Positions 9,180-55,351 of a stretch of DNA of 64,000 nt are shown here, in pieces; positions within the stretch are counted from its first letter, which is position 1; each line of letters begins with the position of its first letter. Source of the DNA: Mobula birostris (taxonomy: Eukaryota). The notes under the pieces are model-generated. The model was given only the letters and a program-made list of their open reading frames with translations. It had not been told where the DNA came from and did not search any database. The translations under genes and the position numbers were made by a program. The stretch spans positions 126,622,242 to 126,686,241 of the forward strand of contig NC_092377.1 in NCBI RefSeq assembly GCF_030028105.1, written 5' to 3'.

Positions 9180-12100
9180 GCGGTTTGCGCGTCTCCTTTA
9201 TCTCCGCCCCTTTGGGTTCCTTTCTTCACCCCCTCCGTTGGAGAAGAAGTATTTGTCCGATAACTGTTCAATACTGTAACCGCGGCCTCACCAACGTCTT
9301 CAGTACACTGCATTATAACCTCCCAACTCCTATACCCAGCGCCCTGACAAACGGAGAGCAGCGTGATAAGCTCTTCCTTCCCCACCCTGTCTACGTGTGA
9401 CGCCGCCTTCAGTGAACTACACACGTACTCGGAGGTCCCTCTGTTCCGTTGCAGAAGATAGTCTTCACACTTATTTTCACTACCAAAGCGCATGACCATG
9501 TATTTTCCAACATCGGACGTCATTTGTTTTCTCAACACTAGCTGCCCCTCCACCAATAATCATATCATCTGCAAACTTGGCAACAAAGCCATCTATTCCA
9601 CATTCTAAATCACTGATATACAGCACAAAAAGTGTCCAATCTCTGATCCCTGTGGAACAGCACAGCCAACCAGAAAAGGATCCTTTTATTCACAGTCACT
9701 GCCTCCTACCACTCAGCCAATGCTCTAACTATGCCAGTAACTTTTCTGTAATGACATGTGGTCCTATCTTGCAGACTGATGTGAGGCACCTTGTCAAAAC
9801 CCTTCTGGAAGTCCAAATATGCAGCATCCACTGCATCCCCTTTATTTATCCTACGTGTAATCTCCTCGAAGAATACAAGCAGGTTTGTTAGGCAAAATTT
9901 TCCCTTCAGGAAACCATGCTGACTTTGTCCAATCTTGTTCTGTGTCACCAAGTACAATGCTTCTTCCGGAATTTTTTGAGGATGTAACTATGAAAATGGA
10001 TAGGGAGAGCTAGCGGATGTAGTGTACCTGGACTTTCAGAAAGCCTTGATAAAGTCCCACATAGGAGATTAGTGGGCAAAATTAGGGCACGTGGTATTGG
10101 GGGAAGAGTACTGACATGGACTGAAAATTGGCTGGCTGACAGAAAACAAAGAGTAGCGATTAACGGGTCCCTTTTGGAATGGCAGGCAGTGACCAGTGGG
10201 GTACCGCAGGGATCAGTGCTGGGACCGCAGCTGTTTACAATATATATTAATAATTTAGATGAGGGAATTAAAAGTAACATTAGCAAATTTGCTGATGACA
10301 CAAAGCTGGGAGGCAGTGTGAAATGTGAGGAGGATGTTATGAGAATGCAAGGTGACTTGGACAGGCTGGGTGAGTGGGCAGATGCATGGTAGATGCAGTT
10401 TAATGTGGATAAATGTGAGGTTATCCACTTTGGTGGTAAGAATGGGAAGGCAGATTATTATCTAAATGGAGTCAAGTTAGGAAAAGGGGAAGTACAATGA
10501 GATCTAGGTGTTCTTGTACATCAGTCACTGAAAGCAAGCATGCAAGTACAGCAGGCAGTGAAAAAAGCTAATGGCATGCTGGCCTTCATAACAAGGGGAA
10601 TTGAGTATAAGAGCGAAGAGGTCCTTCTGCAGCTATACAGGACCCTGGTGAGACCACACCTGGAGTACTGTGTGCAGTTTTGGTCTCCAAATTTGAGGAA
10701 GGACATTCTTGCTATTCAGGGAGTACAGCAGAGATTCACAAGGATAATTCTCGGGATGGCGGGACTGTCATATGTCGAAAGATTGGAGCGACTGGGCTTG
10801 TATACTCTGGAATTTAGAAGGCTGAGAGGGGATCTTATTGAAACATATAAGATTATTAAGGGATTGGACACGCTGCAGGCAGGAAGCATGTTGCCGTTGA
10901 TGGGTGAGTCCAGAACCAGAGGGCACAGTTTAAGAATTAGGGGTAGGCCATTTAGAATGGAGTTGAGGAAAAACTTTTTCACCCAGAGAGTGGTGGATAT
11001 ATGGAATGCCCCAGAAGGCTGTGGAGGCCAAGTCTCTGGATGCTTTCAAAAAAGGAGATGGATAGAGCTCTTAAGGATAGTGGAATCAAAGGTTATGGGG
11101 ATAAGGCAGGAACTGGAGACTGATAGTGGATGATCATTATGATCACAGTGAATGGCGGTGCTGGCTCAAAGGGCTGAATGGCCTAATCTTGCCCCTATTG
11201 TCCATTGTCTACTCCATAACCTCGTCTTTAAAAATTGACTCCAACATCTTCCCAACCACTCAGGTCGGAGTAACTGGTCAATAACTTATTTTCTGCAGCT
11301 TCCTCCTTTCTTGAAGAGTGGAGTGACATTTGCAATTTCCCAGTCCTCTGGCACCATGCCAGAGGTTAATGATTCTTAAAAGATCAGTACAAATGCCCCC
11401 ACAATCCATACTGTTACCGCATTCAGAACCCCAGGGTACAGTTCATCCGGTCCAGGTGACTTGTGTATCTTTCGGCCTTTCAGGTTTTCGAGCACCTTTT
11501 AATTTCACTCACTTCTCTTCCCTCACACCCTTCAACATTTGGCACACTGCTAGTGTCTTTCACAGTGAAGACTAATGCAAAATACTCATTTAGTTCATGT
11601 GTCATCTCGTTGGCCCCTGTTATTATTTCTCCAGCCTCATATTCTAGTGGTCCTATATCCACTCTCATCTCTTTTTTTTACATAATTGAAGCAGCTTTTA
11701 CTATCCACCTTGATATTGTTTGTTACCTTGCTTCATTTTTCATCTTTTCCCTCCTAATGAATATTTTAGTTGCTCTCTGTAGGGTTTTAAAAGATTTCCA
11801 ATCCTTTATCTTCCCACTAATTTTTGCTTTGTTGTATGCCCTCTCTTTCTTTTGCTTTTACATTAACTTTGACTTCCCTTGTCAGCCATGGTTGTATGAT
11901 TTTGCCATTTGAGTATATCTTTGTTTTTGGAACACATCTTTCCTGCACCTTCCTGATTTTTCCTCGAAACTCACACCATTGCTGCTCTGCTGGCATCCCT
12001 GCCAACATCTTCCAGTTTACTTTGGCCAACTCCTCTTTCATGCCACTGTAATTTCCTTTAATCCACAGAAATACTGCTATGTCAGACCTTACTTTCTCAC

Positions 12101-12960
12101 TATCAAGATTCAAGTTTAACTCAATGATATTGTGCTCCTCAGGGCTCTTATATCTTAAGCTCCCTTATCACCTTCGGTTCATTACATAACACCCAATCCA
12201 CTATACCTGATCCCCTAATAGGCTCAATGACAAACTGCTTTAAAAAGCCATCTCATAGGCACTCCACAATCACCCTCTCTTGGGATCCATTTCCAACCTG
12301 ACTTTCCAAATTGACCAGCATGTCGAAATCTCACATGACTAACATAACATTGCCCCTTTGACATGCCTTTCCTATTTCCCGTTGTAATCAATGGTCCACA
12401 TCCCCGCTGCTTTTGGGAGGCCTGGCACCAGGGTCCTTTTACCCTCGCAGTTTCTTAACTCAACCCACAAGAATTCAACACCTTCCAATCCCATGTCACA
12501 TCTTTCTACTAATTGGATGCCTACTTTCCTATCCCTCCGAGGCAACATGTGATCTTGGTCATTCAGCTCCCAACTACAACAATCCTCCAGCCATGATTCA
12601 GTTATGGCCTCAAGGTCATATCTAATAATCTGTAATATTGCAACAAGATCATCCACCTTATTTCCTATACTACACACATTTAGATTAAACACCTTGAGTA
12701 CCATATTTACTGTCCTTTCCAACTCTGTATCTCCAATGATTTCATACTCAGCTTGTTGGCTGCAACTACATCCCATCACCTGCCCACCCTTCCTGACAAT
12801 CTGACGTGCACCGGTTTCCAACCCCCTGCCAAATTAGTTTCATCCTCACCAACAGCTCTAACACACTGACTGCGAGAACATTGGCTCCCCTCGGGTTCAG
12901 GTGCAGCCCGTCACTTTTGAACAGGTCATGCCTCCCGTAGAAACGACACCAAATATCCAA
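9180..12960. mobile_element. Cluster of CR1 LINE fragments: 9180-9955 (-), 9960-11210 (+, RT 3' part and tail), 11215-12960 (-, endonuclease region)
   Basis: HGFLKGKFCLTNLL, GVPQGSVLGPQLF, KFADDTKLGG and RPHLEYCVQFWSP motifs. Confidence 0.85.
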
Positions 12961-12989
12961 GAACCTGAAGCCCTGCCCCCTGAACCAGC

Positions 12990-13740
12990 TTCTCAGCAAC
13001 ACCACTTTCTGATTTCCGTTGCGATTGCTCCCTACGCAACTCCCTCGTCTATTTGTCCCTCCCCACTGATCTCCTTGCAAGCAGATCTAGTACAACACCT
13101 GTCCCTACACCTCCTCCTTCACTACCCTTCAGGGCCCCAAACAGTCAGTGAGCAAGAGCGTCTTCTGCTCTGTCTGCAAGGAAAGCAGTCAGTCTTCAGT
13201 CAACACGGGAACATTGACTGGGAGACACTTCACCAAGCACCTACGCTCTGTCCGCCAGCAGAAGCGTGATCTCCCAGTGGCCATCTATTTTAATTCTTCT
13301 TCCGATTTTGATATGTTAATCCACGGCCTCCTTTACTGTCATGATGAGGCCACACTCAGGTTGGAGGAACAACACCAGTCATCCCCTGTTCCCCCTCTCA
13401 CCTCATCTACTTGCCTACCATCACCTCCCTCTGGTGCTTCACCGTCTTTTTCTTCCAAGGCCTTCTGTTCTCTTCTGTTGGACTCCCCCTTCTCGAGCCC
13501 TGTATCTCTTTTACCAATCAACTTCTCAGCTCTTTAGTTTATCCCTCCCCATCCTGGTTTCACCCATCACCTTGTGCTTCTCTCTCCATCTCCCCCACCA
13601 TTTAAATCTACTCATCATTTTTTCCCTCCAGTCCTGCCAAAGGGTCGGTCTGAAACGTCGACTGTACTTTTTCCCCCACAGATGCTGCCTGTTCTGTCGA
13701 GTCCCTGCAGCACTTTGTCTATGTTGCTCTGAAGAACCGT
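12990..13740 (+). mobile_element. Degenerate Penelope-like 3' fragment
   Basis: HLRSVRQQKRDLPVA...HGLLYCHDEATLRLEEQH (GIY-YIG C-terminal part) followed by a pLTR. Confidence 0.75.
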
Positions 13741-14031: not shown

Positions 14032-14430
14032 TTGAGTTGCTGCCACATGACTGCCTGATCAGATATTTGTGTTCATCAGGTGAAGGTAAAAGTGGCCACT
14101 GAGGGCAAATGTATCACTCATCTCCCCTGGCCATTTAAGGAGCACCTTGTATCTGCTGCCTATTTCCGGAGCGTTGGTAACTGGTTTACGATTGTCACAA
14201 ATACCGAGACATAGATCACGCGTTCATCTTCTTGGGTACGAGAAGTTTGCTGATGGCGGGACAGAGGTTGTCCTCGAGTCTTGTCGGACCAGTTTCAAAT
14301 GTTTGTATCTTCTGCTGACGGGTAGTGGAAGAGGAGAGAATGTTCAAGTGCCAAGGGTCCTGAATTCTGCTGATAGTGGGATCTCACTGTGCGTAGCCGC
14401 CCCACAACATTCTGTCTGGGCCAGCCTTTA

Positions 14431-14452
14431 TCACGAGCCACACATTCCGCAC
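14431..14452 (-). CDS. Gene A exon 6 (short tail, W-CGMCGS-stop)
   Basis: Acceptor cttctgttctacatgcag, homologous to the gene B acceptor cctctgttgtacctccag. Phase 2 matches the TM exon; TGA at 14433-14431. Confidence 0.6.
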
Positions 14453-14614: not shown

Positions 14615-14660
14615 CAGAGAAAGAGAAGCACAACCACAGGCACACAGACTCCCACTGTCA
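14615..14660 (-). CDS. Gene A exon 5 (transmembrane, VTVGVCVPVVVLLFL)
   Basis: tttctgttccccag acceptor, GTAAGT donor, 46 nt (phase 1 to 2). Flanks are homologous to the gene B TM exon. Confidence 0.75.
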
Positions 14661-15559
14661 CTGGGGAACAGAAATATTACAATTAGAGCAAATTGAGCAG
14701 AAACGTCCAGTATAGATGTGGAACAGTCAGTTTACATCCACCCCTCACCGTGCAGTTCCATCTATTCCATTGTGCACTCTGATTGGGATCGATGGAACCG
14801 GGTGGTCTTGCCGATGTTGTTTGTTGCTTCTTCTGTTCTGATTTGAATATTTACTGCAGACACCAGAATGTGTGGTGACAATTGCAGGCTGCCCCCGCAC
14901 CTCCTTCGGCTGTTAGTCGTTAACACAAACGATGCATTTCACTGTATGTTTCAATGTACATGGAACAAACACAGAGAATACAAATTCTCCCACCCTATCC
15001 CACTGCATTTTGTGTCAAGAAATATATCCATCGCCTTATGTGTCAAGTAAGTGTTTTGTACGCAGTGGCACAGGTAGACAGGAGTGCTGGCCTTCGTCAG
15101 TCAGGAGATTTACAATATTGATCACCCTGCTGTTGGACAGATGCCGTTCAGCTGCAATGAGAGCCGAGGGGATTTGACAATGTTGCCCAGACTCAAGGGA
15201 CGGAGCTATTGAGAGAAGCTGAACTCGTTGGGATTTTATTCACAGTAGTGCTGGAGACTGAGAGGTGATCTGAGAGAGGGGCATAAAATTTGAGGGATGC
15301 AAATAAGGTGAACACATTCTTCTGAACCCGAGTTGTGGAATCGAGGAGACAGGGGTTTAAAGTGAAAAGAAACATTTAAAAGGGAGCACAGGGTTGAGAA
15401 AAATCAGCCGCTGTTCAAATGGCAGCACAGACTCAATGGGCTGAATGGCCTTATTCTGCCCCCCTGCCCTCTGTTGTCAAACTGCCCAGCACTGCAACGG
15501 GGAAAAGAGCAGGAGGAGGGGAGAGACCCACTCACTTCTGAGAGTCATTTAAACCTCAC

Positions 15560-15703
15560 CTCGAATTCCCATCAGCATAATAATATCCCGCGTTTCTCCT
15601 CTTTTGGAACTGTCTGTCCTGGTGGACACAATCTCAGAATTCGTCACCGGTGGCGAGGTGGACGTCCCATACGCCACTGTCTCCTGTCTGGGAATCTCCG
15701 AAC
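15560..15703 (-). CDS. Gene A exon 4 (S/T/P-rich stalk, GSEIPRQETVAYGTSTSPPVTNSEIVSTRTDSSKRGETRDIIMLMGIR)
   Basis: cgacag acceptor, GAG|GTGAGG donor, 144 nt symmetric phase 1. Paralogous exon at 34233-34380. Confidence 0.75.
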
Positions 15704-15901: not shown

Positions 15902-16150
15902 CTGATGTGTTGTTGGTGATCTCACAGTAGACGGTGCGAGGGATAACCCGGGTGTAGTTCAGGGTGACTCTGTCAGCTTCCACCCTGGCCTGGCTGGCAA
16001 TCTGACAGTGGAGTTCGTTGCCTTTGTCTCTAGTACAGGTATCCTGGAACATTTCGAGCTTGTGAAGCCATAGGATCTGGGACCAGGATATTGTGCAGGG
16101 ACAGCTGAGGGAGATGGGTTTTCGAATGAACTTACAGAGGCCATGATCAC
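15902..16150 (-). CDS. Gene A exon 3 (83-aa, 6-Cys atypical Ig-like ectodomain)
   Basis: ctcctgacag acceptor, CAG|GTAAGT donor, 249 nt open, phase 1-1: GDHGLCKFIRKPISLSCPCTISWSQILWLHKLEMFQDTCTRDKGNELHCQIASQARVEADRVTLNYTRVIPRTVYCEITNNTS. N-glycosylation sequons NYT, NNT, NTS. Confidence 0.85.
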
Positions 16151-17169: not shown

Positions 17170-19150
17170 GCGCTCTCACAGGCATTTCAAACACAATTTC
17201 GCCATGCAGGAACACTGGCTTTCTCCTTCCAGTCATTCCTTGTTAACATTCATTGAAACTATACCTCGACATTGTTTTATCCCCCCCTTGTTCAATCCCT
17301 TCCACCTATGTTCGTGACACTTCTCACGCTTTGAATTTTTTCAATGATTTTAAGTTTCCTGCCTTATTTTCACCATGGATTTCCAGTTTCTATATACCTC
17401 CATCTCCCATCAGGAAGGTCTCAAAGCTCTCTGCTTCTTTTTGGATTCCAGAGCTAACCAGTTCCCCTCTATCACCACTCTCCTCCCACTAGTGGAATTA
17501 GTCCTTACTCTTAATAATTTCTCCTTTGGCTCCTCCCACTTCCTCCAAGCTCTTGGTGTAGCCATGGGCACCCGCATGGGTCCCAGCTATGCTTGCCTTC
17601 TTGTTGGCTTTGTGGAACAATCCATGTTCCAAGCCTATACTGGTATCCGTCCCCCACTTTTCCTTCGCTACATTGACGACTGCATTGGCGCTGCTTCCTG
17701 CACGCATGCTGAGCTTGTTGACTTCATTAACTTTGCCTCCAACTTTCACCCTGCCCTCAAATTTACCTGGTTCGTTTCTGACACCTTCCCCACCCCCTTT
17801 CTTGATCTTTCTGTCTCTGTCTCTGGAGACAGCTTATCTACTGATGTCTACTATAAGCCCACAGACTCCCACAGCTACCTGGACTATTCCTCTTCCAAAC
17901 CCTCCCTCTTGCAAAAATGCTATCCCCTTCTTGCAATTCCTCTGTCTCCGCCGCATTTGCTCTCAGGATGAGGCTTTTCATTCCAGGATGAAGGAGATGT
18001 CTTCCTTTTTTAAAGAGAGGGGCTTCCCTTCCTCCACCATCACTCTGCTCTCAAACACATCTCCCCCATTTCACACACATTTGCTCTCATCCCATCCTCC
18101 CACCACCCTACTAAGGATAGGGTTCCCCTTGTCCTCACCTTCCATCTCACCAGCCTTGGGGTCCAACATATAATTCTCCATAACTTCCGCCACCTCCAAT
18201 GTGATCTCACCACCAAGCACATCTTTCCCTTCCTCCCTCTTTCTGCTTTCTGCAGGGATCGCTCCCTACGCGACTCCCTTGTCCATTCATCGCCCCCCTC
18301 CCTTCCCACTGATCTCCCTCCCAGCACTTACCCTCGTAATCGGAACAAGTGCTACACATGCCCTTACACTTCCTCCCTCACCACCATTCAAGGCCCCAGA
18401 CAGTCCTTCCAGGTGAGGCGCCACTTCACCTGTGAGTCAGCTGGGGTGATATACCGCGTCCGGTGCTCCCGGTGTGGCCTTTTATATATTGGCGAGACCC
18501 GACACAGACTGGGAGACCACTTTGTTGAATATCTACGCTCTGTCCGCCAGAGAAAACAGGATCTCCCAGTGGCTACACATTTTAATTCCACATCCCATTC
18601 CCATTCTGATATGTCAATCCATGGCCTCCTCTACTGTAAAGATGAAGCCACACTCAGGTTGGAGGAACAACATCTTATATTCCGTCTGGGTAGCCTCCAA
18701 ACTGATGGCATGAACATTGATTTCTCTAACATGCGTTAATGGCCCTCCTCACCTGCTTACCCCATCCCTTATATAGTATTTTCCTTTTTTTCCTCTCTCT
18801 CTGTCCCTCTCACTATCACTCCTTGCCTGCTCTCCATTTCCTCTGGGCTCCCCTACCCATTTCTTAAAGACAAAATACTCTGCAGATGCTGGGGTCAAAA
18901 CAACACTCACAACATGCTGCCCGATCTGCTAAGTTCTTCCTTCCCCTTTCCTTTTCCCTGGGCCTCCCGTCCCATGATTCTCCCCCTTCTCCATCCCTTT
19001 GCCAATCAGCTTTCCAGCTCTTAGCCTCATCCCTCCCCCTCCCACTTTCAAATACCTTACTCTGTCTTCTTTCAGTTAGTCCTGCTGAAGGGTCTCGGCC
19101 CGAAACGTCGACTGTACTTCTTCCTATAGATGCTGAGTTCCACCAGGTGT
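17170..19150 (+). mobile_element. Penelope-like retroelement (RT plus GIY-YIG, frameshifted) in gene A intron 1
   Basis: GVAMGTRMGPSYACL and FLRYIDD RT motifs; VIYRVRCSRCGLLYIGETRHRL GIY-YIG; pLTR with a mutated hammerhead core (CTGCTGA) at 19078-19113. Confidence 0.9.
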
Positions 19151-19674: not shown

Positions 19675-19712
19675 CTGAGGGTGTTTGACTGTAGGACGGC
19701 GGAGACAGCCAT
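19675..19712 (-). CDS. Gene A exon 1 coding part (MAVSAVLQSNTL)
   Basis: ATG in gaaATGG context, CAG|GTAAAG donor, 38 nt phase 2, in frame with exon 2. CpG-rich surroundings. Confidence 0.75.
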
Positions 19713-31469: not shown

Positions 31470-31518
31470 CACAGAATGAGAACCAGGGCATCAAGTAGAA
31501 TGACTCCCACCACCACCA
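31470..31518 (-). CDS. Gene B exon 5 (transmembrane with Asp, VVVVGVILLDALVLIL)
   Basis: ttccattctacag acceptor, GTAAGT donor, 49 nt (phase 1 to 2). Confidence 0.75.
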
Positions 31519-34232: not shown

Positions 34233-34380
34233 CTGGAATTACTATCTCCATATGTGCAACTCGTAGTGGTGTTCCACACCTGTCATCTGTCTGTCTCAGT
34301 GGACACTGGCATCTGAGATGTAATCTGTGGTGGCATAGACAACTGGTCTACTAGTGTCCTCTGCCTGGGACACTCCACGC
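34233..34380 (-). pseudogene. Gene B exon 4 (stalk) with +4 nt frameshift and in-frame TGA at 34285-34283
   Basis: gtgtttgcag acceptor, CAG|GTGAGG donor, 148 nt versus 144 nt in gene A. Reads GVECPRQRTLVDQLSMPPQITSQMPVSTETDR-stop. Confidence 0.7.
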
Positions 34381-35208: not shown

Positions 35209-35460
35209 CTGATGTGCCGAAGCTGATTTCACAGTAGGTAGTGCGGGGGATAACCCAGCTGTAATTCAAGATAACATGGTCAGCATCCACTCTGGCCTGG
35301 CTGGCGTTTCGACAGCAGAGGCTGTTCCCCTCCCCCCTGGTGCAGACATCTCTGAAGGGTCCTCCAATGTCGTGAAGGTGCAGGCTCTGTGCAGCAGTCG
35401 GAAAACAGGGGCAGCTGAAGGAGCTGGTGTCTGGAGTGAAATGGCAGGTGCCATGCTGAC
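35209..35460 (-). CDS. Gene B exon 3 (84-aa Cys-rich atypical Ig-like ectodomain)
   Basis: ctctcgacag acceptor, CAG|GTAAGT donor, 252 nt open: GQHGTCHFTPDTSSFSCPCFPTAAQSLHLHDIGGPFRDVCTRGEGNSLCCRNASQARVDADHVILNYSWVIPRTTYCEISFGTS. Confidence 0.85.
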
Positions 35461-39932: not shown

Positions 39933-40100
39933 CACTGCCGCTGTGGAGAGACGGTGGCTGATCTGATGCATTTCTATAGGCTCCGCCACGAGTTCAAGAG
40001 CGCTGATTGGTGCAACTTGTTGTCACTCATTGTTCAGGTCAACCTACCGTCAACAAACCAGCGCACGTGTTTTGGGCGCGAAAAGAAGGGTTTAATTTTT

Positions 40101-43100
40101 TGGTGAACGCAGCAGGCCGGGCGGCATCTCTAGGAAGAGGTGCAGTCGGCGTTTCAGGCCGAGACCCTTCGTCAGGAATAACTGAAGGAAGAGTGAGTAA
40201 GGGATTTGAAAGTTGGAGGGGGAGGGATCCAAAATGATAGGAGAAGACAGGAAGGGGAGGGATAGAGCCAAGAGCTGGACAGGTGATAGGCAAAAGGGGA
40301 TACGAGAGGATCATGGGACAGGAGGTCCGGGAAGAAAGACAAGGGGGGGGACCCAGAGGATGGGCAAGGGGTATATTCAGAGGGACAGAGGGAGAATAAG
40401 GAGAGTGAGAGAAAGAATGTGTGCATAAAAATAAGTAACAGATGGGGTACGAGGGGGAGGTGGGGCATTAGCGGAAGTTAGAGAAGTCGATGTTCATGCC
40501 ATCAGGTTGGAGGCTACCCAGACGGAATATAAGGTGTTGTTCCTCCAACCTGAGTATGACTTCATCTTTACAGTAGAGGAGGCTGTGGATAGACATGTCA
40601 GAATGGAAATGGGATGTGGAATTAAAATGTGTGGCCACTGGGAGATCCTGCTTTCTCTGGCGGACAGAGCGTAGATGTTCAGCAAAGCGGTCTCCCAGTC
40701 TGCGTCGGGTCTCGCCAATATATAAAAGGCCACATCGGGAGCGCCGGACGCAGTATATCACCCCAGCCGACTCACAGGTGAAGTGTTGCCTCACCTGGAA
40801 GGACTGTTTGGGGCCCTGAATGGTGGTAAGGGAGGAAGTGTAAGGGCATGTGTAGCACTTGTTCCGCTTACACGGATAAAAGTGCCAGGAGGGAGATCAG
40901 TGGGGAGGGATGGGGGGGACGAATGGACAAGGGAGTTGCGTAGGGAGCGATCCCTGCGGAATGCAGAGAGAGGGGGGGAGGGAAAGATGTGCTTAGTGGT
41001 GGGATCCCGTTGGAGGTGGCGGAAGTTACGGAGAATAATATGTTGGACCCGGAGGCTGGTGGGGTGGTAGGTGAGGACCAGGGGAACCCTATTCCTAGTG
41101 GGGTGGCGGGAGGATGGAGTGAGAGCAGATGTACGTGAAATGGGGGAGATGCGTTTAAGAGCAGAGTTGATAGTGGAGGAAGGGAAGCCTCTTTCTTTAA
41201 AAAAGGAAGACATCTCCCTCGTCCTAGAATGAAAAGCCTCATCCTGAGAGCAGATGCGGCAGAGACGGAGGAATTGCGAGAAGTGGATGGCGTTTTTGCA
41301 AGAGACAGGGTGAGAAGAGGAATAGTCCAGATAGCTGTGAGAGTCAGTAGGCTTATAGTAGACATCAGTGGATAAGCTGTCTCCAGAGACAGAGACAGAA
41401 AGATCTAGAAAGGGGAGGGAGGTGTCAGAAATGGACCAGGTAAACTTGAGGGCAGGGTGAAAGTTGGAGGCAAAGTTAATAAAGTCAATGAGCTCTGCAT
41501 GCGTGCTGGAAGCAGCGCCAATGCAGTCGTCGATGTAGCGAAGGAAAAGTGGGGGACAGATACCAGAATAGGCACGGAACATAGATTGTTCCACAAAGCC
41601 AACAAAAAGGCAGGCATAGCTAGGACCCATACAGGTGCCTATAGCTACACCTTTAGTTTGGAGGAAGTGGGAGGAGCCAAAGGAGAAATTATTAAGAGTA
41701 AGGACTAATTCCGCTAGACGGAGCAGAGTGGTGGTAGAGGGGAACTGATTAGGTCTGGAATCCAAAAAGAAGCGTAAAGCTTTGAGACCTTCCTGATGGG
41801 GATAGAAGTATATAGGGACTGGACATCCATGGTGAAAATAAAGCAATGGGGGCCAGGGAACTTAAAATCATCGAAAAGTTTAAGAGTGTGAGAAGTGTCA
41901 CGAACATAGGTAGGAAGGGATTGAACAAGGGGGGATAAAACTGTGTCGAGGTAAGCAGAAACGGGTTCGGTGGGGCAGGAGCAAGCTGAGACAATAGGTC
42001 GGCCAGGACAGGCAGGTTTGTGGATCTTGGGTAGGAGGTAGAAACGGGAAGTGCGAGGTGTGGGAAGTATAAGGTTGGTAGCAGTGGATGGGAGATCCCC
42101 TGAGCGGATAAAGTCGGTGATGGTGTGGGAGACAATGGCCTGGTGCTCCTTAGTGGGGTCACGATCGAGGGGTAAATAAGAGGAGGTGTATCACGTACAT
42201 CTGCTCTCACTCCATCCTCCCACCACCCCACGAGGAATAGGGTTCCCCTGGGCCTCACCTACCACCCCACCAGCCTCCGGGTCCAACATATTATTCTCCA
42301 TAACTTCCGCCACCTCCAACGGGATCCCACCACTAAGCACATCTTTCCCTCCCCCCCTCTCTCTGCATTCCGCAGGGATCGCTCCCTACGCGACTCCCTT
42401 GTCCATTCGTCCCCCCCATCCCTCCCCACTGATCTCCCTCCTGGCACTTTTATCCGTGTAAGCGGAACAAGTGCTACACATGCCCTTACACTTCCTCCCT
42501 TACCACCATTCAGGGCCCCAGACAGTCCTTCCAGGTGAGGCAACACTTCACCTGTGAGTCGGCTGGGGTGATATACTGTGTCCGGTGCTCCCGATATGGC
42601 CTTTTATATATTGGCGAGACCCGACGCAGACTGGGAGACTGCTTTGCTGAACACCTACTCTCTGTCCGCCAGAGAAAGCAGGATCTCCCAGTGGCCACAC
42701 ATTTTAATTCCACATCCCATTCCCATTCTGACATGTCTATCCATGGTCTCCTCTACTGTAAAGATGAAGCCACACTCAGGTTGGAGGAACAACACCTTAT
42801 ATTCCGTCTGGGTAGCCTCCAACCTGATGGTATGAACATCGACTTCTCTAACTTCCGCTAATGCCCCACCTCCCCCTCATACCCCATCTGTTACTTATTT
42901 TTATACACATATCCTTTCTCTCTCTCTCCTTTTTCTCCCTCTGTCCCTCTGAATATAGCCCTTGCCCATCCTCTGGGTCCCCCCCCCGCCTTGCCTTTCT
43001 TCCCGGACCTCCTGTCCCATGATCCTCTTGTATCCCTTTTGCCAATCACCTGTCCAGCCTTTGGCTCCATCCCTCCCCCTCCTGTCTTCTCCTATCATTT

Positions 43101-43290
43101 TGGATCTCCCCCTCCCCCTCCAACTTTCAAATCCCTTACTCACTCTTCCTTCAGTTAGTCCTGACGAAGGGTCTCGGCCTGAAACGTCGACTGCACCTCT
43201 TCCTAGAGATGCTGCCTGGCCTGCTGCGTTCACCAGCAACTTTTATGTGTGTTTCTTGAATTTCCAGCATCTGCAGAATTCCTGTTGTTT
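40101..43290. mobile_element. Penelope-like element with ~1-kb inverted arms (40101-41137 minus; 42190-43235 plus)
   Basis: RT (TKGVAIGTCMGPSYACL, LRYIDD) and GIY-YIG (VIYCVRRSRCGLLYIGET) on the minus strand; the 3' part and pLTR are repeated inverted on the plus strand. Confidence 0.9.
43157..43192 (+). ncRNA. Minimal type I hammerhead ribozyme motif, intact core
   Basis: AGTC-CTGACGA-AGGGTCTCGGCCT-GAAAC-GTC-GACT; predicted cleavage after 43188. Confidence 0.7.
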
Positions 43291-43771
43291 GCTTTAATTT
43301 TTTCCCGCTTTTCTAATCGTTGCCATTAAATGCCTGAAGACGCACTTAACACATCCGGGACAGCTCCTCCCCCTCTGCCATCTGATTTCTAAATGGATGT
43401 TGCACTTTTATTATTTCTGTTTTTGCGCTGTTTCTTCATGTGACTATTTAATATACATGTATAAAGTTGCTTTAAATCATTTATTTTTCTATATGTTATC
43501 ATGTATGACATTGTACTTCTGCTGCTAAGTTAACAGATTTCACGACGTATGTGTGTGATTTTAAAACTGATCCTGAATCTGACTTTGTAAGTTTTCAATC
43601 ACTGACACATTTTACTGAGATTGCTTTACTTTACCTTCTTTACCACCCTATCAATCATCTGGAAAGTGGTCTCCATATTCCATTTCTCTGCCAGTACCTG
43701 CATCCCGCTCTATCCTTTGCCAGACTTATACACAATATTATTCACAATACCAGTGAGCTGTCTACAAACCA

Positions 43772-44057: not shown

Positions 44058-44204
44058 ACAAACCACTCAGCTATATTCTCATCCAAGTCATTGCTATTAT
44101 AACCAACAGTGATCCAGAGAGATCCCTGCGGAATACCAGTACACATGGGTCTCCCGCCTCTACTCTGACTTCTATGAAACCAAATGGCCAATTCACTGTG
44201 GATC

Positions 44205-47200
44205 CCATAAGACCATAAGACAAAGGAGCAGAAGTTGGCCATTCGGCCCATCGAGTCTGCTCCGCCATTTTATCATGAGCTGATCCATTCTCCCATTTAG
44301 TCCCACTCCCTCGCCTTGTCACCATAACCTTTGATGCCCTGGCTACTCAGATACCTATCAATCTCTGCCTTAAATACACCCAATGACTTGGCCTCCACTG
44401 CTGCCCGTGGCAACAAATTCCACAGATTCACCACCCTCTGGCTAAAAAAATTTCTTTGCATTTCTGTTCTGAATGGGCGCGCTTCAATCCTTAAGTCATG
44501 CTCTCTCGTACTAGACTCCCTCATCATGGGAAACAACTTTGCCACATCCACTCTGTCCATGCCTTTCAACATTCGAAATGTTTCTATAAGGTCTCCCCTC
44601 ATTCTTCGAAACTCCAAGGAATACAGTTCAAGAGAGGACAAATGTTCCTCATATGTTAACTCTCTCATTCCCGGAATCATTCTAGTGAATCTTCTCTGTA
44701 CCCTCTCCAAAGTCAGCACATCCTTTCTTAAATAAGGAGACCAAAACTGCCCACAGTACTCCAAGTGAGGTCTCACCAGTGCCTTATAGAGCCTCAACAT
44801 CACATCCCTGCTCCTATACTCTATTCCTCTAGAAATGAATGCCAACATTGCATTCGCCTTCTTCACTACCGACTCAACCTGGAGGTTAACTTTAAGGGTA
44901 TCCTGTACAAGGACTCCCAAGTCCCGTTGCATCTCAGAACTTTGAATTCTTTCCCCATTTAAATAATAGTCTGCCCGTTTATTTCTTCTGCCAAAGTGCA
45001 TAACCATACACTTTGCAACATTGTACTTCATTTGCCGCTTCTTTGCCCATTCTTCCAATCTATCCAAGTCTCTCTGCAGACTCTCCATTTCCTCAGCACT
45101 ACCGGCCCCTCCACCTATCTTCGTATCGTCCGCAAACTTAGCCACAAAGCCATTGATGTAGGACGTAAAAAGAAGCGGCCCCAACACTGATCCCTGTGGA
45201 AAACCACTGGCAACTGGCAGCCAACCAGAATAGGATCCCTTTATTCCCACTCTCTGTTTCCTGCCAATCAGCCAACGCTCTATCCACGTATGTAACTTTC
45301 CCGTAATTCCATGGGCTCTTATCTTGTTAAGTAGCCTCAGGTGTGGCACCTTGTCAAAGGCCTCCTGAAAATCCAAATATACAGCATCCACTGCATCTCC
45401 CTTGTCTAGCCTGCTGGTAACTTCCTCAAAAAATTGTAATAAGTTTGTCAGGCAGGATTTTCCTTTAAGGAATCCATGCTTGCTAAGTTCTGCCTATCTT
45501 GTCAAATGCCTCCAGGTACTCTGTAACCTCATCCTTGATAATCGAATCCAACAACCTCCCAACCACCGATGTCAAGCTAACAGGTCTGTAATTTCCCTTT
45601 TGCTGCCTTGCCGCCGCCTTAAATAACGGAGTGACATTTGCAATCTTCCAGTCCTCCGGAACCATGCCAGAATCTATCGACTTTTGAAAGATCATTGCTA
45701 ATGCCTGTGCAATCTCCACAGCTACTTCCTTCAGAACACGAGGGTGCATTCCATCTGGTCCGGGTGATTTATCTACCTTTAGACTATTCAGCTTCCTGAG
45801 TACTTCCTCCGTCGTAATTGTGACTGCGCACACTTCTCTTCCCTGCCACCCTTGAGCGTCCAGTATACTGCTGATGTCTTCCGCAGTGAAGGCTGATGCA
45901 AAATACTTGTTCAGTTCCTCTGCCATCTCCTTATCTCCCATTACAATTTCTCCAGCGTAATTTTCTATCAGTTCTATATCTACTCTCACCTGTCTTTTAC
46001 TCTTTACATACTTGAAAAAGCTTTTAGTATCCTCTTTGATATTATTTGCTAGCTTCCTTTCATAGTTAATCTTTTCTCTCTTAATGACCTTCTTAGTTTC
46101 CTTTTGTAAGGTTTTAAATACTTCCCAATCCTCTGTCTTCCCACTAATTTTTGCTTCCTTGTATGCCCTCTCCTTTGCTTTAACTTTGGCTTTGACTTCT
46201 CTTGTCAACCACAGTTGCATCCTTTTTCCATTCAAAAATGTCTTCTTTTCTGGAATATACCTGTCTTGCATCTTCCTCACTTCTTGCATAAACTCCAGCC
46301 ACTGCTGCTCTGCCATCTTTCCAGCCAGTGTCCCTTTCCAGTCAACTTTGGCCAGTTCCTCTCTCATGCCACTGTAATTTCCTTTGCTCCACTGAAATAC
46401 CGACACATCAGATTTCGGCTTCTCTTTTTCAAATGTCACAGCGAACTCAATCATGTTATGATCACTGTCTCCGAAGGGTTCCTTCACCTCAATCTCTCTA
46501 ATCACCTCTGGTTCATTGCACAATACCAAATCCAGTACAGCCGATCCCCTAGTGGGCTCAACAACAAGCTGTTCTAAAAAGACATCTTGCAGACATTCTA
46601 CAAATTCTCTCTCTTGAGATCCAGTGCCGACCTGATTTTCCCAATCCACTCGCATGTTAAAATCCCCCGCAATTATCGTAACACTGCCCTTCTGACAAGC
46701 CTTTTCTATTTCCTGTTGTAATTTGTAGTCCACATCCCAGCAGCTGTTTGGAGGCCTATAAATAACTGCCATCAGGGTCCTTTTACCCCTGCTATTTCTT
46801 AGCTCAACCCATAAAGATTCTGCACCTTCTGATCCTATATCACCTCTTTCTAATGATTTAATATCATTTCTTACCAATAAAGCCACACCTCCCCCTCTGC
46901 CTACCTTCCTATCCTTCCAATACACCGTGTATCCTTGGACGTTCAGCTCCCAGAGACATGCATCCTTTAGCCACGTCTCAGTGATGGTCACAATATCATA
47001 CCTGCCAATCTGTAGCTGTACGACAAGATCATCCACCTTATTCCTTATGCTGCGTGCATTTAAGTATAACACCTTAAGACCAGTATTTGGTACTTTTCGA
47101 TTTGATTTCACTGCAACTTTATTGCACTGCAACTCATCCCAATGGCAACAAATTTGCCCCATCACCTGCCTGTCTTTCCTGACATCTTTACTGCTCACTA

Positions 47201-47760
47201 TCTTAGATTTATTTCTGTTTTCCCCTTCCTCCGCTCTATCATTCCGATTCCCAGCCCCCTGCCAAATTAGTTTAAACTCTCCCTAACAGCTCTATTAAAC
47301 TTTCCCGCCAGGATATTGGTCCCTTCAGGTTCAGGTGTAACCTGTCCTTTTTGAACAGGTCATGCTTCCCCCAGAAGAGATCCCAATTATCCAAGAATCT
47401 GAAGCCCTGCCCCCTGCACCAGTCTCTCAGCCACGCATTCATCTGCCTGATCCTACTATTCTTGCCCTCGTTAGCACGTGGCACAGGTAGCAATCCCGAG
47501 ATTACTACCCTGGAGGTCCTGCTTCTCAGCTTCCTTCCTAACTCCTGGAAATCTCTCTTCAGGACCTCCTCCTTTGTCCTATCTATGTCATTGGTACCAA
47601 CATGTACCAAGACAACTGGCTGCTCACCCTCCCCCTTCAGAATATTCAGGACCCGATCCGAGACATCCCATACCCTGGCACCTGTGAGGCAACACACCAT
47701 GCGGGTATCTCTATCAGGCTCACAGGATCTCCTGTCCGTTCCCCTGACTATGGAATCCCC
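44205..47760 (-). mobile_element. Near full-length CR1 LINE (ORF1 SGNH-esterase part, ORF2 endonuclease plus RT, frameshifted)
   Basis: VHVGTNDI esterase motif (47272-47700), YLNARSIRNK endonuclease, VAKFADDTKIGG RT, (cttatg)n tail near 44205. Confidence 0.93.
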
Positions 47761-53379: not shown

Positions 53380-53739
53380 CTCGTACCAGGACCACGGTCC
53401 CGTTCCCTCGGAGCAGCAGCTGCCGGTCGGGAAGATGAACGGACGCCAGGCAGTGATAGGTGTTGGAGTGGCTCGGTCGGAGGTGCCGAAGTTGGAGGGA
53501 GAGTCCCGTGCCGATCCCACTCTCAGGGAGAGCATCTTGCTGCCGGGATCCCTCGGGGGGCGGATAGACGACACGTTCCTCTCCCTCCTCCTCTGTCCCG
53601 CCGACCACCCAATAGGGGTAGATGATCACCCGGGACTCCGTCAGCCCCAGAACTTCGCAGTGCAGCGTCACGTTGGAGCCACTCGGGACCTCCAACCTCC
53701 GAGGCCACTGGGACACGGAGAGGGTGGCGAGCGAGATGT
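53380..53739 (-). CDS. Gene C exon 3 (V-J-type Ig domain 2, CD28H/TMIGD2- and NKp30-like)
   Basis: 360 nt phase 1-1, GAG|GTAAAT donor. SVSQWP, VTLHC, YW, LSLQL, YHC and J-like GNGTVVLV motifs. Confidence 0.92.
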
Positions 53740-54991: not shown

Positions 54992-55351
54992 CTCGTACCA
55001 GGAGCACGCTCCCGTTCCCTCGGAGCAGCAGCCGCCGGTCGGGAAGGTGAACGGACGCCAGGCAGTGGTAGGTGTTGGAGTGGCTCGGTCGGAGGTGCCG
55101 GAGTTGGAGGGAGAGTCCCGTGGCGATCTCACTCTCAGGTAGGGCGGCTTCCTGCCGGGATTCCTCTGGGGCCGGGTAGACGACACGTTCCTCTTCTCCC
55201 TCCTCCGTCCCGCCGATCACCCAATAGGGGTAGATTATTAACCGGGGCTCCGTCAGCCCCAGAACCTCGCAGTGCAGCGTCACATTGGAGCCACTCGGGA
55301 CCTCCAACCTCCGAGGCCACTGGGACACGTAGAGGGTGGCGAGGGAGCTGT
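54992..55351 (-). CDS. Gene C exon 2 (V-J-type Ig domain 1)
   Basis: 360 nt phase 1-1, GAG|GTGAGT donor; 16 of 120 residues differ from domain 2 by manual alignment. Confidence 0.92.

Follow-up and report, generated by a model that had tools for sequence, protein, structure and literature searches.

Positions 15902-16150 of the window, the whole 64,000-nucleotide stretch of Mobula birostris contig NC_092377.1 that was analysed, are a genuine exon, present in transcripts, of a small surface protein of the manta ray, read from the minus strand. The six-cysteine head that it encodes is, with a probability that we place a little above even, a V-type domain, strongly derived, in which strand G has been lost and extra disulfides acquired, in a protein with an optional stalk and almost no cytoplasmic tail. 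The exons, their transcription in two splice forms, the protein family with its distribution and the lack of a recognisable sequence family are shown by the data; the fold, the loss of strand G at the protein level, the disulfides and the function are inferred. V domains cannot normally do without their last strand; a surface protein that lacks strand G, or that borrows one, would if this is true reveal a novel route to building or regulating Ig-like modules.

Exon structure and transcripts of gene A

The gene to which this exon belongs, gene A, was modelled by comparison with a second copy in the window, gene B, and by direct reading of the sequence. Its parts are as follows.

19675..19712, minus strand: exon 1a (predicted), ATG and first 12 signal-peptide codons, MAVSAVLQSNTL then a split Arg codon
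16468..16514, minus strand: exon 1b, hydrophobic core of the signal peptide; donor from an RNA joint, acceptor predicted from sequence
15902..16150, minus strand: exon 2, six-Cys head of 82 residues, phase 1-1; open reading frame with both borders in spliced contigs
15560..15703, minus strand: exon 3, Ser/Thr/Pro-rich stalk, 144 nt, phase 1-1, optional; from RNA joints
14615..14660, minus strand: exon 4, membrane-spanning segment; RNA joints at 14660 and 14615
14431..14452, minus strand: exon 5, coding part; joint 14615/14452, sequence read directly

Exon 1a runs from its ATG to an AG/GTAAAG donor and is colinear with the N termini of the homologues P0002 and P0019; the RNA reads analysed do not extend over it. 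Exon 2 is bounded by an AG acceptor and a G/GTAAGT donor, in phase 1 at both ends, and provides 82 open codons (16148-15903, minus strand), the translation of which has cysteines at positions 5, 16, 18, 38, 48 and 75. Cys16 and Cys18 form a CPC motif, Cys75 lies in YCEI, seven residues before the donor, and an LNYT sequon is present. At the other end of the gene, exon 5 finishes a Trp codon that is split at the exon 4/5 junction and adds CGMCGS before the stop codon (14433-14431), giving a C terminus identical to that of M. birostris XP_072123319.

The RNA data come from four public runs of one study (X1-X4), which are labelled only "RNA?". Contigs from these runs carry the joints 16468/16150, 15902/15703, 15560/14660 and 14615/14452, all of which are GT..AG on the gene A strand; because these exon-exon joints are exact, the runs contain spliced transcripts of gene A or of a near-identical allele. 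The joint 16468/16150 is present in X1, X2 and X4, and a joint that skips exon 3, 15902/14660, in three of the four runs (X2, X3 and X4). Since exon 3 is 144 nt long and in phase 1-1, both splice forms are in frame, and the spliced products are intact proteins of 181 residues with the stalk and 133 without it. The exon borders proposed in a first-pass annotation of the DNA, made from its letters, match the joints 16468/16150 and 15902/15703 exactly, and the accompanying remark that the exon ends soon after YCEI is correct.

The most hydrophobic 19-mer of the gene A product is encoded by exons 4 and 5. A charged residue within the membrane helix was considered and rejected, since this 19-mer begins directly after an Arg, which is thus juxtamembrane. 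The membrane segment is followed by only a few residues, two of them Cys, so that the protein itself carries no signalling motif; neither YxxM nor another Tyr signalling motif occurs in the tail CGMCGS.

Other features of the transcripts concern endings and alleles. An alternative last exon at 14216-14374 (minus strand) has about 50 open residues, from CRIQDPW to KKMNA, that match the cytoplasmic tail of the Hemitrygon orthologue P0019; the ending used in the gene A contigs is the short CGMCGS rather than this one. An extra exon or retained stretch at 14657-14926 (minus strand) is joined to exon 3 in one run (joint 15560/14909), and also occurs in isoform X1 (P0021) of the M. birostris annotation, in which it causes the anchor to be read out of frame; the splice form is probably non-productive. 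The RNA contigs differ from the window in coding sequence at 16051-16071 (exon 2) and 15580-15669 (exon 3). One run has K30N and NLRQ-type changes, resembling XP_072123319 in the C-C' loop, on an otherwise window-like exon 2, which suggests mosaic allelic variation, and the exon 3 contigs of all four runs have a 3-nt deletion and several substitutions relative to the window. There may be polymorphism in the gene A head, or a mosaic of alleles or of paralogues.

The gene B copy and the batoid family

Searches of the window (tblastn, E 1.5e-24; family HMM on the six-frame translation) revealed only one further copy of the head, at 35209-35460 on the minus strand. The recognisable parts of gene B are as follows.

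35209..35460, minus strand: exon 2, paralogous head with a seventh Cys (LCC); from tblastn and the family HMM
34233..34380, minus strand: stalk exon, disabled; sequence read and frames compared with family stalks
31470..31518, minus strand: membrane-anchor exon, with an Asp in the hydrophobic run

The two heads are 56% identical and share all six Cys, and the gene B sequon is LNYS; translation and alignment therefore bear out the earlier observation that the six cysteines and an LNY(T/S) sequon are common to both copies. Between the two exons dN is 0.39 and dS 0.82 (dN/dS 0.47), and nucleotide identity in exon 2 (65%) is no higher than in the upstream intron. The stalk exon of gene B has an in-frame TGA (34285-34283) and, at 148 nt, is 4 nt longer than that of gene A, which shifts the frame; the head exon is still open, with every Cys kept. 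It may be that gene B survives only as a stalkless form, or that it is decaying. At the position of its anchor Asp, the M. hypostoma orthologue has Pro-Val.

A profile made from two sequences was used with HMMER against 1.84 billion representatives, and matched 11 proteins of batoids, at E values between 1.6e-43 and 2.2e-8; when full-length proteins were searched in a second round, again with a profile, three members were added, all from rays. All members, including XP_072123319, XP_062912770 and XP_059813359, are annotated "uncharacterized protein", and they come from five species, i.e. Mobula hypostoma, M. birostris, Hemitrygon akajei, Hypanus sabinus and the sawfish Pristis pectinata. Neither profile search returned a shark, skate or bony-fish member; the second of them relies on shared words, so absence of the family from sharks and skates is not proven. 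Seven other HMMER hits below E 1e-3 (P0011, P0012 and P0014-P0018) are partial or internal-repeat matches only and were discarded; P0011, P0014 and P0015, when read, are repeat-built proteins without likeness to the batoid family. A literature search for the batoid six-cysteine family found no paper. The family is unnamed, clustered and fast-diverging, and has been seen so far only in rays and sawfish.

Cys5, Cys16, Cys18, Asp36, Cys38, Cys48 and Glu76 are invariant in the family. Among 15 family sequences from the five species, five of the six cysteines are thus invariant, the exception being Cys75, which is Tyr in one stingray protein (P0019). Gene A carries the complete family signature: Cys5, Cys16-Pro-Cys18, Asp36, Cys38, Cys48 and Cys75-Glu76 within about 82 residues, followed by stalk and anchor. 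On the evidence of the alignment, this pattern of six-cysteine conservation is not due to chance.

Two subtypes can be distinguished, an A-type with LHC or LRC at residues 46-48 and a B-type with LCC, i.e. with an extra Cys at 47. In every stalk-containing B-type protein, the additional Cys of the head is accompanied by one where the stalk begins (E-C-P-R-Q), whereas three A-type genes lack both and one has the stalk Cys only. This distribution points, weakly, to a fourth disulfide in the B-type that would tie the start of the stalk to the head; the pattern of paired Cys reflects only one or two evolutionary events. At closer range, gene A and XP_072123319 are colinear over all 133 residues, with identities of 21/21 in anchor and tail, 69/83 in the head and 20/29 in the signal peptide, and their differences cluster at the N terminus of the head, in the C-C' loop and at positions 52-53.

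Predicted fold of the head and the strand G question

Sequence methods place the head in no recognisable family. None of 13 family members (0/13) matches any Ig family in Pfam at E <= 10, and PDB sequence searches with single sequences and with the family profile gave no match; a Pfam match of one member to Adeno_E3 (E 0.0036) was treated as noise. As a positive control, V exons of a neighbouring gene in the window match Pfam V-set (PF07686) at 7e-8 and about 1e-7; alignment of the family profile to a neighbouring V exon with hhalign gave a probability of 0.1%. The tyrosine-corner motif is absent, and the canonical Trp of the C strand (Trp27) is confined to gene A and P0002, its counterpart in M. 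birostris, with R, H or Y elsewhere. A G-strand motif (FGxG or J-like) is absent from exons 2 and 3. Exon 2 has the phase 1-1 borders of V-set domain exons, and such an exon, with the exon order signal, domain, stalk and anchor, is typical of IgSF receptor genes.

The AlphaFold2 model of the gene A head, which rests on an alignment of only 13 sequences, has a pLDDT of 89.1, a pTM of 0.76 and nine strands (residues 2-4, 6-8, 13-16, 24-30, 34-40, 45-48, 53-57, 60-64 and 74-79). Tight hairpins at 30-34, 40-45 and 57-60 are combined with longer cross-overs at 16-24, 48-53 and 64-74, an order which, as read from the strand list, would fit V-set strands A, A', B, C, C', C'', D, E and F. Cys16 and Cys18 fall in the predicted B strand and Cys75 in the predicted F strand, 59 residues apart. 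Across the family, conservation is higher in the predicted strands than in the loops, and the conserved residues within strands alternate (i, i+2, i+4), as in Q.L.LH, F.D.C.R and V.L.Y, which supports the prediction independently of the model. A single-sequence predictor, given two copies of head plus stalk, did not fold the chain (pLDDT about 30), a result that speaks neither for nor against a homodimer.

When the gene A model was compared with the PDB by Foldseek, the top rows comprised VH, nectin-2 D1, CTLA-4, TCR V-alpha, PVRIG and CD28, at TM scores of 0.50-0.58 and, for VH, nectin-2 D1, CTLA-4, PVRIG and CD28, probabilities up to 0.96, with no match at E < 0.14. Exhaustive structural alignment of two independent models gave mostly V-set neighbours, superposed over 75-80 residues at 2.9-3.5 Å. 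The majority of the best 50 matches in three alignments, exhaustive or re-ranked, are V-set domains that span 75-80 of the head's 82 residues, and the aligned ranges end at about residue 100-106 of VH, VHH or CTLA-4, i.e. before strand G. For the second model, that of a B-type homologue, exhaustive alignment gave nanobodies (5.6 and 5.4), CD8-alpha (5.1) and catshark CD8-alpha (4.3). Among the Swiss-Prot models the neighbours are weak, mixed beta domains, and include J-less human TRAV segments (TM 0.43-0.46) and ATPase N-terminal barrels. In a language-model feature search all of the named neighbours are Ig families, mostly V-set, with scores at the level of a lead only. Ly6/uPAR, TNFR-CRD, Kunitz and sushi modules were considered and rejected, none being among the structural neighbours of the head.

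Some of these comparisons would also suit a new small disulfide-rich, barrel-like beta fold without Ig ancestry, the likeness of which to V domains would be that generic to beta sandwiches. Such a fold would account for the missing sequence link to Ig families and the missing canonical motifs; moreover, the highest Z obtained with the first model is that of CusB (5.3), a barrel that is not Ig, ATPase N-terminal barrels rank first in Foldseek for the second model, and shape searches of the AFDB clusters and the ESM Atlas yield weak matches to mixed beta domains only. The preponderance and coverage of V-set neighbours, the number and order of strands together with loop lengths that fit V-set A to F, the placement and spacing of the B- and F-strand cysteines, the IgSF-like gene architecture and the adjacent V-set receptor gene all argue the other way, and a new fold is considered improbable, if clearly a candidate. 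V-set strands A to F are the most consistent structural description, and common ancestry with Ig domains is likely but not shown, because the structural scores lie below the level that the tools regard as discriminating.

The first-pass annotation had proposed an Ig domain without a G strand. The missing strand is the part of that proposal which is supported, as set out below; the Ig assignment is not one that sequence methods return, and the C-strand Trp is not conserved. Neither a confident match to a non-Ig family nor a complete canonical Ig fold was found.

Absence of strand G is supported by three independent lines, i.e. a model that includes the stalk, the exon 3-skipping transcripts and the broken stalk exon of gene B. 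In an AlphaFold2 prediction of a homologue head with 30 stalk residues, the head has pLDDT >90 and no strand follows F; the mean pLDDT of residues 81-90 is 68, and from residue 90 onwards it is <50. About the first 16 residues of the stalk are conserved across both subfamilies (E-C-P-R-Q-x-T..D.LS.PP), so the start of the stalk could be structural. On this basis the head might be a complete Ig domain, with the beginning of the stalk exon (ECPRQxT.VD.LS) as a G strand that an intron in the FG loop separates from the rest, a proposal with which the intermediate pLDDT of residues 81-90 and the constant association of the B-type stalk Cys with the extra head Cys would agree. The prediction forms no strand there, however, and the conserved stalk residues follow one another directly instead of alternating. 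Exon 3 is skipped in transcripts from three of the four runs, and the annotations of two Mobula species include isoforms without the stalk, while gene B has kept its head exon intact with a broken stalk exon. A split G strand is thus held to be very unlikely, and the conserved start of the stalk is read, from the model, as a tethered tail rather than a strand.

How a V-type head would manage without its last strand is a separate matter. Without G, strand F would be an exposed sheet edge, which could be completed in trans, by a partner or a second copy that donates a strand. There is a precedent in VpreB, a V domain without the J-encoded ninth strand that does not fold by itself but does so once lambda5 has inserted a strand (PMC12859133), and a strand-swapped CTLA-4 dimer is among the Foldseek neighbours of the head. 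The failure of VpreB to fold unaided also counts against the favoured reading of the head. By contrast, AlphaFold2 models the isolated head with high confidence, two extra disulfides offer another route to stability, and no partner is known; completion in trans is accordingly given a low probability. That the membrane-anchored, G-less V-type domain folds alone, its two extra disulfides replacing the stabilising role of the last strand, is judged less likely than not. An autonomous head of this kind would be a new minimal structural subtype of the Ig fold, in a polymorphic ray and sawfish gene family, and would amount to a compact, disulfide-stapled scaffold of 82 residues.

Comparison with known systems, possible role and genomic neighbourhood

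Of the systems compared, VpreB is the nearest precedent for the ray head. On the favoured reading of the ray head, both are germline-encoded and V-type, end shortly after the F-strand Cys, lack the last strand and continue into an unstructured extension (for VpreB, PMC12859133). They differ in several respects. VpreB is plainly homologous to V-lambda, is a secreted protein with a single disulfide, and receives its strand from lambda5. The ray head shows no sequence likeness to any V family; it contains six Cys and is anchored in the membrane, and no donor of a strand is known for it. Germline TCR and Ig V segments likewise have a coding unit that ends a few residues after the second Cys, but the ray exon ends in a splice donor, not a recombination signal, and lacks the conserved Trp and YxC. 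Chaperone-usher pilins are bacterial Ig-like sandwiches without a C-terminal G strand, the groove of which is always filled by a strand from a neighbour; they are unrelated to the ray head and provide a mechanistic analogy only.

The likenesses to CD28/CTLA-4/ICOS and to CD3-epsilon that had been noted in the sequence did not survive comparison. No MYPPPY, GxG strand motif or CxxC occurs in exon 2 or exon 3 of gene A, as had been noticed at the outset, and neither MYPPPY nor FDPPPF occurs in any family member. Compared with CD28, CTLA-4 and ICOS, the ray protein is without the MYPPPY/FDPPPF loop, the G strand, the YxxM tail and sequence similarity, and its head is about 35 residues shorter than their ectodomains. 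Gene A also lacks a stalk Cys, having Ile at the position of the CD28-type stalk Cys, where B-type members have CPRQ. Membership was rejected on the defining motifs of the FG loop and the tail; CTLA-4, CD28 and ICOS are among the structural neighbours, scoring no better than nanobodies. Membership of the CD3 epsilon/gamma/delta group was also rejected, there being no CxxC stalk motif and no cytoplasmic ITAM, and no CD3 chain is among the structural neighbours of the head in the Foldseek, exhaustive or re-ranked alignments.

If the derived V-type reading is right, exon 2 of gene A would by itself encode the complete folded head of a small type I membrane glycoprotein, a diverged V-type sandwich in which strands A, A', B, C, C', C'', D, E and F are retained and G is lost, with three putative disulfides instead of one. 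The head would be borne on a stalk of the O-glycosylation (mucin) type that exon skipping can remove, so alternative splicing would set its height above the membrane. From the probably glycosylated head, the optional stalk and the lack of a signalling tail, a role in recognition can be inferred, and the gene A protein may be a cell-surface binding module, perhaps a ligand or perhaps a co-receptor dependent on partners.

The batoid-family genes adjoin a canonical CD28-like V-set receptor gene, two exons of which lie in the window.

53390-53734, minus strand: first of two V-set exons of the neighbouring gene; Pfam V-set about 1e-7
55002-55346, minus strand: second of these exons; Pfam V-set about 1e-7

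The clustering and divergence of the family, together with its site beside this gene, fit a function in immune recognition. To our knowledge, CD28-like receptors have barely been charted in the cartilaginous-fish lineage, and the family would add to the repertoire of these fishes an unnamed, rapidly diversifying set of probable immune-recognition genes.

The two neighbouring V-set exons are near-identical and canonical, each with a complete G strand that has GNGT as in CD28/CTLA-4, and they have a VYPPP/VYPAP motif in the middle of the domain, not in the FG loop. Elsewhere in the window, three further first-exon-like pieces on the minus strand (at about 22856, 39893 and 48110) end in ..Q(L/P)NTLR followed by a donor, and are paired by DNA similarity with the exon 1a region of gene A; these could be remnants of additional copies, or first exons that A and B use alternatively. 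Most of the intergenic space consists of retroelement-like repeats with reverse-transcriptase-type open reading frames (9500-13000, 17260-18800, 40100-43300 and 44200-47400), and a run of N occupies positions 96-224.
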